Positions 33,293-44,076 of a stretch of DNA of 64,000 nucleotides are shown piece by piece. Below the pieces are notes generated by a model. That model ran no database searches. It saw nothing but the letters and a program-made list of their open reading frames with translations, and had not been told where the DNA came from. The position numbers were made by a program, and so were the translations under genes. The DNA lies in NCBI GenBank assembly GCA_037447605.1, contig CM074806.1:1426001-1490000 (forward strand), read 5' to 3'. The stretch comes from Zygnema circumcarinatum SAG 698-1b (taxonomy: Eukaryota; Plantae; Zygnematophyceae). Position 1 is the stretch's first letter, and every line of letters starts with the position of its first letter.

Positions 33293-36200
33293 TCATCTGT
33301 CCTCAGCAGGCCGTCTTCCGTCCTTTCTAAAGCTCAGGGAATGTCCTGCCGGGGCACAGTCACGTCCTAAGCAAATAGAGAAGGAGACGCTGTCAGATGG
33401 CATTACAATTTCCCGCCTTTGGAAGCCCTCAGGCTTTGGAACTCGTCTCTCTCCTTCCCGCAACTCCCCTCCGGGAGGTGCCTCAAGTCTGCCCCCCTCC
33501 CCTGCTTCGATCATCCGCTTCGCCGAACTGCTTTCCTCATACGACCGCCCTTCTCTCCCTCCCACCGGCCTGTCAGCCCTCCCCGGCCAGTGTTTCTGCA
33601 CTTCAATTTGACTATCTGACAGACTTCTGTTCACCCTCTCTTGAGGGCCTTCCAAAGGCTCTCCATCTGATTGCGAATGAGGTCCTATGAGGGGGCTCAC
33701 AAATGTGCTGCTTGAGGAGCTGCTGGCCACATCCTGCAGCAACAGTTGTGTGCGGTACAATGCTGCGTCCTCTCCATCCAGCTGAATGCGAACTCTATCA
33801 TCATCCGCTAACTTGCGGAGAGCCTCCTGTGCGAGGGAGGTAGCTTGCATGTTCTTTTCCTTCAGAGATGCAAGGGCCAGCAGCGATTGCAGGCCTCCCA
33901 TAGCCACAATCTGCAAGATCCAAAAGTGCATGGCAGTTCATTAACGGATTACTGCCATCGCTTATAGCACATATGCTCCCATGGTGCTATTATAGCATTC
34001 ACCGTGACTGACATTATTGTTTCTCCAACTATGCTGTGCTGTGCTGTACTATACTATGCTGTGCTGTCTCTCATTACTCGCGTTCCTTCCTTCCTTCCTT
34101 CCACACACAATTTTGACACATACCTGATACTTGTTTTCATGATGGACTGCCAAATGCCAGAATGCACCGGCTGCAAGACGCTGCACATCATTATGCAGTG
34201 ACTGTGACATGGCAATGATGGACCATAGACCCTCCTCCCGAACAAGGCTGTTCACTATGGTGTGGTCTTCACAAAGCCGTCTCAGTCCTGCTGCAGCTGC
34301 CTCCTGCACCCCTCTCCAAACAACAAGGTTAATAGCCATATAAAAAAACGGCCCACGTGTACTCACATATGTAAAGGGGCTACACATCACCTTGCAGTTG
34401 AATGCATTGCTTTGTTGGGGATAGAAATAGAGATATCACCTGCAGTTCTGGGTCTCCTGCACACGATGCATTACAGAGCAAGCGCAAGCCTCCATTGGAA
34501 GCAATCTCATATCGTAGATTCTCATTGATGGCGAGCGATGCCACCAGCCAGAGAGCAGCCTCTTGAACCAGCCCTGTATCCTCCTCACACATTTGCAGAG
34601 CAAGGCGCAAACCTCCGCCATTCACCACCTGCACAGTGATATCACTCAGGCCAAAGCATACATACACATGAAATCAGGTAGAGTAACCCTTAGGCTGACA
34701 TAACCAACCATGAGGCAAGCAGAATTCAGCGAGCCACAAAAAGCACTTAATCTCCTCTATAAACGTTATCTGCAAACCTCACCCACTTACACACCAACAG
34801 GCAGTGCAGCTTACCTGCATCTGTGCCGCCTCTCCTATAGCCAAACATGCCAGTGCTCTCGTTGCCATTTCTCGAAGTTCTGGAGTATGATGCTCCGCCA
34901 CCTACACAAGACGTCAACTTACAGCCAAAAAAAGTTAGTCTCGCACCCTAAAAGTGACAACCAATGTAAGATTCACATCTTAGAACCTCTTGTGGTAAGC
35001 TCACCTCTGCTAAGGGCAACAGACGGCCTATTCCCCCCATGGCCACAACGCAGGCACGCTGATCTCCATCAAGGGCCAAATTCCCCAATGCCTCGCAAGC
35101 GAAGGCCTGCATCTCTACGAACAGCTTGTCCTTTTCCGGCGGATTTGATTTCTCCAGATACGAGAGAAGTGTTGCGACAACCTCCGGACCGGTCTTCTTT
35201 GCCACTTCAAATTCAGTGCTCAGTCGACTGAGAGCTGCAACTGCAGCCGGGGTGGCCTGCAACCAACCCCTCACACGAACATCTTCCTCAATCTTTGAGC
35301 ACACAAATACAAACAATAAGGCTGCTTCACGCAGCAGTATTAAAATCACACAATACACATCGGTGCAGCAAATCAGCCGAACCACAGAACACTGGAAGAG
35401 AGACTCGTTCCCTACCTCACGATAGGGGCCACTGATTATGTACAGCAAAACATGCTCCAATACTCCCGCTTGCAAGAGCAGCTGCCTATTGGGCCATGCC
35501 CTGGCGAGGGCTGCAACTGAACGGAGAGCCACTCCCTTCCTCTCCGCTCTCCGCGATCGCAACAAATCCGCGAGGGGAGCGAGGTGGCGTGCGTGCGCTA
35601 TGACCAGCAGACCTGCACAACCCTCGTACTCAACATTTTGAGAAGGTGGGAATATACAATGGCCACTCTGGAAACGAAAGTGCCCACAAGCTTGAAAATG
35701 TTTAAGTGCTGGGGGTGGTGCTGTTGTCACCTGAGTCCTTCTGCTGTGCGCTGAGCTCCAACCACTCCACTGCAAACTTCTGCGCTGCTTGATCTTTCCC
35801 CACCACTCGCTGCAAAGCTCGGTACACGGAGCGGTCGGGCCGAGAGAGCTCCGCTAGAGGAGAGAGTGCTCCAACCAATGCTGTTGGATACCTGCACGAC
35901 GCACTCGGAAGGGAGCCATCACCTCCCTGCAATGCAGTGTATCTACTCCCTGGCGGACCATCTCTATCGGACAACACGGCAAAGAAGGAATGGAACGGCA
36001 ATGCAATTGCAATGCAATTGCAATTGCAACTGCAATGGCAGTTGCCAGCCATGGCAGCAGCACAGCGGGGGCCCCCCTGAAAGACAGTTAAGAGGCCAAA
36101 GGGCTTCCTGTCTTGCGAGAAAGATGGGTAAAGACCCAACGCGAACAATTATATCGTTTGATAATGAAGGCCGCCTCATAGATTTTGAGGGCCTTGGGGA

Positions 36201-42200: not shown

Positions 42201-44076
42201 CATTTTCAAATGTTCCTCTTCTGTAAGCCGTAGATTAGCTGCTACCAAGCAGCAAATTGCCACTGTTTGCTTGACATTGCATCCTTCCTGTCCATGTTCA
42301 CGCCCTTCATCTATACTCAATTCTATCAATGCTATATCAGCGTCGGTGAACCTTGCTGACCTGCAAGTAGACCTTTTTAGTGACCTTTGTGAGTCGCAAT
42401 TCTTTACCGTCCGTTATCTCTGTTAAAACATTGCTTCTGCACATTCTCTAATGCATGCCTACCCTTTACAACAACTGTCTTTGCCTTGCATTTGGAACTG
42501 CACTTGAGCTGTCCTTTGCGTCTAGTTGGAGCGGTCCTTCAACCAAGCTCTGGTTGCCCCGTATCTTTCCTGTACGAAAGCCTCACTGAAGGTGAAAGAG
42601 AGTTCAGCCCATGTTTGAGAAGGGAGAAGACAGAAGCAAGAGTTCACCTTTCAATGTACTCGGTGTTACGGTACTCGATCCGAAACACAGGCTCGTGTGC
42701 ATTGCGAGGCACGAAGAAGAGGGCTTCACTGCAGACCTTCAATGTGCCAGCAACTCTGCTCCACCTGCCATGCAAACTCACAAACCTTGAGATACTGTTC
42801 TGTTATCCAAAACCTCACTCTAAAGCCATCCGCCTCTGCACGAGATCACATGGGCCATCCAATCAGCGATATACCTTTGCTCACTTCCCACCAGATGAAA
42901 ATGGCACTGGTAATCCTTAAAGTAATACTCGCCCTCCTCAAGCAGCAAAAGACTGAATCTGTCGGGCCCCTCCAGCGCCAGAACTGGCGGAGCATCTGCG
43001 CCAAGGGGGCTCATGTCTGCCACTTTTGCTCCTTTTGCATTCCAGAACAGTCCTCCCATAAACGGCTTAGGAAACTGCGCTCCTGGAGGTTCTTTCTTCA
43101 TGCTCCCATGCGTCCTGTTGGGAAGGTGACCCATGGGAGTGGCTGGAAGGTTTGCTCCAGTCATGGCGGCTGCTTCCAAGGGTCCTCTGGGACTGGGAGT
43201 ACCGATGGAGCTGGTGCGGCCGGCTGAGCTATCCCCTCCCGGAGAACCCATAGTATGGCCTTCGGCAGAAGCAGCCCCCGCGAGGGCGATGTCATATGAA
43301 GCTTTCCACTTATCCAAACTCAGATTACCTACCCATTCGGGACCCTCCTCGCTACTATGCTCCTCTCTCGGTCCTCTACTCGCAGTACTGTGGCTATTGG
43401 AAAACACAATCTTGCGCTCTCTAGGAGAGGCTCCATCAGAACGCCCCCGCCGAGAGTAGAATCCTCTCTTCTCTGTGTTGGTGCTGCTAGGAGACACTGT
43501 AGACACGCTGGACGATCCAGCAGGAGGTGCGGCTGCTCCGCCAGTCTCCCCTCCCTTGGAATTTTTGGATGGAGCTGTCGAGTAGAAGCCTTTGCGGCTT
43601 GCCATGGGGCCTCCTCGCGGACGCTGAGGTCCACTACTGAATCCTACCGGCTCCTCATCCTTGTCCAAACCCTCTGCGGTCATCAGAGCGCCCACATTCA
43701 TCGATTTTGACCGTCCGATCAATCGACGGCTCGCAACCGGACCTGCCATGGGAGTGGAGGCTGCACCCGGCCCTGCCTGTCTAGACGATCCTCCTAACGC
43801 TCCCGTGGCGCCTTCTCCCGTTGACCGCGGTCCCCACGTCACGCTATGTACCATCTCCCTCAGACGCGGGACACTCTCCTCCAGCTGCCTCTTAGCCTGC
43901 TGCACGGTTGCTTGCTCCTCTGGCAGCTCAGAAGCCTCTGCCGTGCCGGCTGCTGCAGGCGCTAAACATTCTTCCGGCCCGGGCACCTCCCTTGCCTGCT
44001 CTGAAGCGTCAGCGGAACCTGCGCTATAGCTATTATTCATGGCGGCTGCTGCTGAGTGCAGAGGAGCCCCGTCCAT
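33293..44076 (-). CDS. FAN/NSMAF-type GRAM/PH-BEACH protein, apparently continuing into C-terminal armadillo repeats
   Basis: [17 protein letters not shown] (FAN-like N-terminal domain); [14 protein letters not shown]…YFQPFN (PH); [67 protein letters not shown] and [10 protein letters not shown] (BEACH). Exons at 33293-35775 encode ARM repeats ([11 protein letters not shown]…GGIGRLL; [13 protein letters not shown]; GGLQSLLAL). Domain calls are secure; the single-gene model is about 0.7. Confidence 0.85.

Follow-up and report, generated by a model that had tools for sequence, protein, structure and literature searches.

A FAN-type BEACH protein with predicted armadillo repeats in place of the WD40 propeller in Zygnema circumcarinatum and other green algae

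Does a BEACH protein of the FAN/NSMAF type end in armadillo (ARM) repeats where a WD40 propeller would be expected, or do two adjacent genes give that appearance? The question is raised by a locus of the alga Zygnema circumcarinatum SAG 698-1b, found in a stretch of 64,000 nucleotides (nt) of contig CM074806.1 (assembly GCA_037447605.1, positions 1,426,001 to 1,490,000); we call this whole stretch the window, and all positions below are counted in it. An original prediction, made from the letters of the window, had joined FAN-type PH and BEACH exons to ARM-like exons farther along the same strand into one GRAM/PH-BEACH-ARM gene without WD40 repeats. PH-BEACH-WD40 is treated as a fixed functional unit of BEACH proteins (PMC11554844), and the protein described here departs from that canonical module. 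The region is eukaryotic and intron-rich. Pieces of open reading frame (ORF) on the minus strand between 44076 and 37074 match Pfam PH_FAN and Beach, while ORFs below 36300 have the appearance of helical repeats, and a language-model look-alike search placed one of these among armadillo proteins. Our results argue strongly for a single gene encoding a green-lineage variant of FAN/NSMAF, in which PH_FAN and PH-BEACH are followed by an ARM superhelix and for which a membrane-associated adaptor role is proposed below.

The BEACH-ARM joint in RNA contigs

The minus-strand gene has 26 exons and encodes about 1451 amino acids (aa), from the ATG at 44076 to the TGA at 33539-33537. The protein starts with a disordered N-terminus and continues with a FAN-type PH/GRAM domain and PH-BEACH; about eight ARM repeats then follow after a linker, with no WD40. 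Exons from 39364 downward were set by RNA joints, and the ten exons above were modelled. The features are as follows (a slash marks a splice point; P-numbered orthologues are introduced in the next section).

33537..44076, minus strand: whole FAN-ARM coding span, from RNA contig joints (33200-39254), homology (5′ exons), and BLASTP over aa 366-1425.
42875..44076, minus strand: exon 1, a low-complexity extension of ~370 aa that includes two KGFY motifs, followed by the beginning of PH_FAN (Pfam PH_FAN, E 3e-6).
41013..42755, minus strand: PH_FAN stretch after exon 1 (Pfam PH_FAN, E 4e-9; tblastn collinear with P0007, P0008, P0009, and P0010; boundaries by homology).
40689..40771, 40484..40561, 40033..40067, and 39868..39931, minus strand: exons 6-9, PH of PH-BEACH (tblastn to orthologues).
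37078..39530, minus strand: exons 10-18, BEACH and a 75-aa linker, to the phase-2 donor (Pfam Beach, RNA joints, translation).
39365..39464, minus strand: predicted GC-AG intron, donor AAG/GCAAGC, modelled from the orthologue match.
35892..37077, minus strand: 1186-nt intron separating the BEACH-linker exon from the first ARM exon (joint 37078 to 35891 in a 4418-nt contig of run X1).
33701..35891, minus strand: exons 19-25, a conserved lead-in helix (PDRSVYRA) and ~8 ARM repeats (all joints, in four runs).
35731..35891, 35416..35612, 35005..35256, 34815..34901, 34440..34628, 34124..34303, and 33701..33910, minus strand: limits of exons 19-25.
33537..33569, minus strand: coding portion (10 codons and the TGA) of the last exon, with the 3′ untranslated region continuing below (joint 33569 to 33701 in X1-X3).
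37274..37275, minus strand: minor alternative donor GAG/GTGCGG, same acceptor (one X4 contig).

In the protein, aa 1-370 form the low-complexity extension, aa 375-545 PH_FAN, approximately aa 547-633 the PH of PH-BEACH, approximately aa 650-945 BEACH, aa 945-1025 the linker, and aa 1030-1421 the helical repeats.

The domains predicted on the BEACH side were recovered by profile search. FAN-type N-terminal PH (Pfam PF25400) matched 42820-44076 at an expect value (E) of 3e-6 and 42644-42781 at 4e-9, above the curated cut-off. BEACH (PF02138) matched four exon ORFs (E 5e-16 to 6e-8) that jointly cover profile positions 59-259. The PH directly before BEACH was located by tblastn in exons 40771-39868, which are 55-79% identical to the PH_BEACH region of orthologues; these short exons 6-9 have no Pfam match individually. 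As predicted, WD40 was absent from the ORF and exon pieces of the window scanned with Pfam, and the frame passes from BEACH into ARM and then to a stop.

Eight sequencing runs of the same organism were available, five of which contain 48-63% of sampled words of 35600-38900, the fraction that exon-only sequence would give. Contigs of four runs (X1-X4) were mapped to 33200-39100. Fourteen of the 15 joints detected form the main spliced form, all of them GT..AG on the minus strand; the fifteenth is the minor alternative donor. The joint that matters most lies in a 4418-nt X1 contig of depth 80, which runs from the exon end at 37078 to the exon start at 35891, skips 1186 nt bounded by GT..AG, and has 161 nt on its shorter side. 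The phase-2 donor TCCAA/GTGAG (AA/GT, 37078/37077) that had been predicted was thus the one used. The acceptor was instead GTCGTGCAG/G, with 35891 as first exon base; the acceptor proposed near 36291 was used in no contig, and the optional mini-exon at 36934-37003 was found in none. The BEACH-side ORF ends "...RRSSK" at a TGA (37076-37074) that the donor GT (AA GTGAG) overlaps. In the spliced form the frame is kept after RRSSK and stays open for 435 further codons through seven more exons to the TGA at 33539-33537. Because the stop codon overlaps the donor at 37078, gene finders would easily split the gene in two.

The skipped sequence is the longest intron of the gene. It holds an in-frame ATG at 36052 and also a GCAATT/GCAATGCAATT microsatellite (35998-36045), the source of "CNCNC" and "LQLQLQ" ORF stretches that can be mistaken for coding sequence.

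Several observations weigh against the single-gene reading and its ARM assignment. The joint from 37078 to 35891 was assembled in one of the four runs, X1. Contigs of X2-X4 end at 37076 and at about 35889, where an unspliced contig (35862-37105) branches off at a depth of 10-11, compared with 41-121 on exon contigs; such a break is expected of an assembly graph that contains a spliced form together with an unspliced one. ARM contigs in X2-X4 have about twice the depth of BEACH contigs (121 versus 66, 85 versus 41, and 92 versus 44), which may reflect 3′ bias or an extra ARM-only transcript. The evidence consists of assembled contigs, not single reads, from runs labelled "RNA?", and the 5′ exons (39255-44076) and start codon come from modelling, not RNA. 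Single window exons reach Pfam Arm only below threshold (E 0.015-0.7). The repeats are therefore assigned to ARM through their homology to orthologues; in tblastn the window exons are 27-70% identical, by exon, to the orthologues' ARM region. The function of all family members, finally, is inferred.

Part of this evidence would suit two adjacent genes, a BEACH-only gene ending at the TGA 37076-37074 and an ARM-only gene starting from an ATG at 36287 or 36052, with the joined contig a read-through or chimera. Since the donor overlaps the in-frame TGA, unspliced RNA has a clean coding sequence for a protein with BEACH alone; the ARM exon is preceded by in-frame ATGs, and both the unspliced contig and the twofold ARM depth in X2-X4 can be read this way. 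However, the joint is canonical GT..AG and preserves the frame. Depth in the intron is only 5-11, so an intronic start cannot supply the coverage of the ARM region and does not account for the depth gap. Nor is there a GC or CpG island in the intron, whose GC content is 0.50 and whose observed/expected CpG ratio is 0.60, compared with 0.72 and 1.07 at 43900-44900; the lack of a GC-rich promoter-like stretch between the two halves had been part of the original prediction. The orthologues bear further on this alternative.

Orthologues and phylogeny of the green FAN-ARM proteins

The ARM piece 35005-35610 gave five weak matches among 1.84 billion representatives. A Closterium protein, P0003, has PH_FAN, Beach, and ARM, and this match led to the whole family once it and Spirogloea P0007 were used as search seeds. 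Every named member belongs to the green algae: Spirogloea, Closterium, Mesostigma, Pycnococcus, Chloropicon, Myrmecia, Apatococcus, Coccomyxa, and Botryococcus, with further members in Chlorella, Parachlorella, Micractinium, Auxenochlorella, and Prototheca. Public protein sets contain this architecture for more than 20 green algae, both Chlorophyta and streptophyte algae. The contigs of several members are short (3.5-4.9 kb), lack introns, and are probably transcripts. From about rank 26 the matches are classical WD40 FANs of animals, Amoebozoa, Capsaspora, Thecamonas, and Naegleria, and no land-plant member was found among the best 120.

Pfam found Beach in all 26 green members scanned, PH_FAN and ARM_ARMC5 in 23 each (the latter with scores below that family's cut-off), PH_BEACH (PF14844) in 20, and Arm in 18. 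WD40 (PF00400) was found in none of the 26 green orthologues and in all of the listed non-green FANs.

The modelled window protein aligns by BLASTP in a single alignment over aa 366-1425 to Closterium P0010 and Spirogloea P0007 (54% identity to each) and to Pycnococcus P0008 (44%). WD40-type FANs align solely to aa 372-947, at 42-45% identity. Residues flanking the joint (K/...) align to continuous Closterium sequence, and at the codon position of the 1186-nt intron the Closterium gene, too, is interrupted by an intron. In Pycnococcus a single genomic ORF of 3276 nt (1091 aa) encodes the whole of PH_FAN-BEACH-ARM without interruption, so that no splicing needs to be inferred there. Orthologues from more than 20 algae, one of them this uninterrupted ORF, are continuous across the exact point at which two genes would have to be divided, and the search of the 1.84 billion representatives yielded no close orthologue consisting of ARM alone. 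We consider the existence of two separate genes highly improbable. The spliced in-frame contig and the collinear orthologues bear out the single GRAM/PH-BEACH-ARM gene that was originally proposed and, with it, the coding nature of the ARM-like exons downstream.

In Closterium sp. Naga37s-1 (L001 11637-14854), several orthologue exons are doubled, 60-250 nt apart and 85-98% identical (for example, 13707-13790 and 13889-14062). The doubling, whether it reflects a tandem duplication at the locus or an artefact of assembly, may explain why model lengths range from 1001 to 2063 aa.

A comparison with FAN by phylogeny, which had been suggested as a check, separated the two types. The tree was a quick IQ-TREE search (LG+C20) on the PH_FAN-to-BEACH region of 52 rows. 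One branch, with a Shimodaira-Hasegawa-like approximate likelihood ratio test (SH-aLRT) support of 100, divided the 24 green rows of ARM type from the 28 FANs of WD40 type. The window protein grouped with the transcript-derived P0027, with Closterium and then Spirogloea outside (supports 99, 99, and 97). Provided that gene and species trees agree, this position identifies the source of the window as a zygnematophycean streptophyte alga. After the green group, all best matches of the PH-BEACH core are FANs, which are thus its closest non-green relatives. The tree was built without other BEACH classes as outgroup, so that its root is not fixed and it is compatible both with a green group sister to the FANs and with one nested within them. 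That WD40 is the older state follows solely from the fact that all other BEACH classes have it (PMC11554844).

Might the locus be fused and yet regulated to make two products? Retention of the 1186-nt intron leads immediately, by translation, to the TGA that overlaps the donor and so to a BEACH-only product of 1016 aa. Use of the donor at 37275 shifts the frame and likewise gives a BEACH-only product, with a junk tail. The retained-intron contig occurs in three runs at ~17-26% of BEACH contig depth, a stop codon lies exactly on the donor, and the intron concerned is the longest of the gene. In the nearest relative, P0027, the ORF of a EukProt transcript ends "...LHPRKKP" just after BEACH, near the position of the weak donor 37275; either its assembly is truncated or a second species has a BEACH-only isoform. 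On the other hand, low-depth unspliced sequence is ordinarily expected from pre-mRNA, the alternative donor is weakly evidenced (one X4 contig of depth 18, with 26 nt on the shorter side), P0027 may be truncated, and Pycnococcus has no intron there. Such a two-product locus, although compatible with the single gene argued for here, is in our judgement unlikely.

Upper exons and flanks of the gene

The ten upper exons were modelled from collinear tblastn matches to orthologues combined with frame-keeping GT/GC..AG splice-site pairs, enumerated against orthologue alignments. The GC donor of intron 39365-39464 was chosen because only that donor restores WVQGK/VSNFDY, which corresponds to WVNGKVSNFDY in the orthologues; a nearby GT donor would remove four conserved residues. 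Among the modelled introns is also one of 933 nt at 41715-42647. Two automatic exon finders were rejected. One, a dynamic-programming finder using codon-usage log-odds and splice matrices from 15 RNA-defined introns, broke the 5′ half into 30 tiny exons; a second, with homology bonuses, placed a spurious intron in exon 1 and missed exon 10.

By the modelled exon lengths, RNA contigs of the four runs start 56-94 nt upstream of the ATG at 44076. These starts lie in the promoter-like stretch 43900-44900, and microsatellites occur in and beside this GC-rich sequence at 44654-44817 and 45033-45076: (CGGG)x8.5, (ATCC)x19.5, and (TACA)x11. The ATCC array upstream of the gene gives rise to spurious "IHPSIHPS" ORFs. 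The disordered N-terminal extension, which is partly conserved in P0027, contains two (R/K)(K/R)GFY motifs (window 43460-43600; aa 163 and 205). Their spacing is similar in P0027, and they are absent from the Closterium extensions. KGFY may be a short linear motif.

At the other end, the gene had been predicted to reach about 33293. The main form stops earlier, at the TGA 33539-33537. Only with the last intron (33570-33700) retained, as seen in X4 alone, does the ORF extend to 33295, close to the predicted limit. Within 32030-33569, a convergent plus-strand gene ends in a ubiquitin-family domain (Pfam E 4.5e-8, 32030-32317). RNA contigs over the last FAN-ARM exon continue more than 3.6 kb past 33200; they may reach this convergent gene, so that the 3′ ends of both genes may overlap or be only a short distance apart. 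In the intron 33911-34123, X4 contigs have loose ends, AGATCGGAA and TTCCGATCT, on either side of a short repetitive segment (arrays of TGCTG and TTCC, 34028-34102). We take these ends to be Illumina adapter sequence, and the pattern at 33960-34100 looks like a library artefact rather than biology.

Predicted fold, related proteins, and putative role

An AlphaFold model, which had been proposed as a check, was made with AlphaFold2 for the orthologue Pycnococcus P0008, using a 26-row alignment, and the window repeats were mapped from that model. The predicted local distance difference test (pLDDT) was ~85 for PH_FAN and the PH of PH-BEACH and ~90 for residues 625-1004, so the ARM superhelix was modelled confidently. 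BEACH itself was modelled poorly (pLDDT 30-60; overall predicted template modelling score, 0.42), and therefore nothing is drawn on the relative placement of domains. The tail is all-helical, with eight three-helix repeats and capping helices that map to window aa 1069-1405; this corrects the predicted count of about seven repeats to about eight plus caps.

In Foldseek, template modelling scores normalised by target length were 0.77 for a designed ARM protein (root mean square deviation, 3.4 Å), 0.72 for importin-alpha, and 0.64 for Vac8. The P0008 model also matched beta-catenin and the PH-BEACH crystal structures of LRBA and neurobeachin (NBEA). By sequence, the Spirogloea tail found Vac8 (E 5e-12) and ARMC4/ODAD2 (E ~2e-10) in the PDB, and P0008 matched Pfam Arm at E 2.5e-19.

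Could the tail be a decaying, non-functional appendage, with PH-BEACH alone mattering? Three of the 26 green members lack a Pfam ARM match, and the first repeats are poorly conserved, as the five weak matches to 35005-35610 show. Against this, the tail is open and collinear from prasinophytes to Zygnematophyceae, the last repeats are 46-70% identical to those of orthologues, the predicted fold is confident, and some of its residues vary little or not at all (N703 and W943 of P0008, among others). Decay of the ARM tail can be considered extremely improbable.

The nearest known system is FAN/NSMAF (the LvsF class of Dictyostelium), with which the green protein shares the PF25400 PH/GRAM domain, PH-BEACH, small size, and the lack of a ConA-like domain or N-terminal solenoid. 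FAN/NSMAF has a C-terminal WD40 propeller, whereas the green protein has about eight ARM repeats; the window protein adds a disordered N-terminal extension of 370 aa, and the green proteins form their own group in the tree. Orthologues already stand in databases under other names: "factor associated with neutral sphingomyelinase activation" in Pycnococcus provasolii (P0008), "probable protein FAN at N-terminal half" in Coccomyxa (P0021), "BEACH domain-containing protein" in Chloropicon (P0014), SM000002S05677 in Spirogloea (P0007), and CAI5528181.1 in Closterium (P0010). They have the same domain order as the window protein and are collinear with it end to end at 40-55% identity, but they differ in N-terminal extensions, introns (none in Pycnococcus and 25 in the window gene), and the length of a disordered C-terminal tail.

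LRBA, NBEA, LYST, and the plant protein SPIRRIG share the PH-BEACH core (PDB 1t77 and 1mi1 were matched by an orthologue at E 1e-77) and also pair BEACH with an alpha-solenoid. In those proteins, however, the solenoid lies at the N-terminus, accompanied by a ConA-like domain, and WD40 always follows BEACH (PMC11554844); the green protein lacks the propeller and carries its solenoid after BEACH. Armadillo proteins are built of tandem three-helix repeats, each of about 42 aa, wound into a right-handed superhelix. The green tail shares this canonical ARM superhelix with Vac8, importin-alpha, and beta-catenin. The green protein has no Vac8-type N-terminal acylation motif (myristoylation/palmitoylation site) or IBB domain, and its ARM region is not stand-alone but the C-terminal module of a 1451-aa BEACH protein. 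The likeness to the Vac8 family is thus one of fold only.

What might such a protein do? Animal FAN couples a receptor tail to neutral sphingomyelinase; its WD40 domain binds the NSD of TNF-R55 and RACK1, and the N-terminal PH domain binds phosphoinositides. We know of no counterpart in green algae of these animal partners (TNF-R55 and the nSMase2 pathway). The ARM superhelix is a classic binder of extended peptides. Human NSMAF is located at early/sorting endosomes, and in several human BEACH proteins the PH-BEACH unit binds membrane proteins by their cytosolic tails (PMC11554844). By analogy with these human proteins, the PH/GRAM and PH-BEACH domains would hold the green protein on an endosomal membrane or on the cytosolic tails of membrane proteins (cf. 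PMC11554844). The ARM groove would bind an extended partner peptide, the role that WD40 has in animal FAN, and the partner would be different from the animal ones. An ancestor of green plants would have swapped the C-terminal beta-propeller of FAN for an alpha-solenoid. Since PH_FAN and PH-BEACH are conserved, a function at membranes or cargo tails is the one most likely to have been kept; a membrane-associated sorting or signalling adaptor is accordingly a reasonable proposal, for and against which we see the balance as about even.

A full-text literature search found no paper on BEACH-ARM proteins or on FAN in algae. The original prediction of an undescribed system holds in that sense. It does not hold for the architecture itself, which is already fairly common in databases, where the more than 20 algal entries carry automatic names. 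Together, the entries and the lack of a paper point to a real, conserved, unstudied variant of a known family, not to a new kind of system. A stronger claim would be that the green FANs are a distinct, undescribed class of BEACH proteins, in which the propeller was swapped once for a solenoid that was then kept from prasinophytes to Zygnematophyceae, and which can possibly be switched to a BEACH-only form by intron retention. We regard this as tentative and somewhat doubtful.

A lineage that has PH-BEACH with ARM repeats for a propeller is a natural experiment on what the propeller contributes, and it can show whether PH-BEACH works with another partner-binding module. The family also offers algal cell biology a small, tractable BEACH protein, the Pycnococcus version being intronless and 1091 aa long. 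Should land plants prove to lack it, the protein would also mark a loss from trafficking or signalling at or after terrestrialisation.

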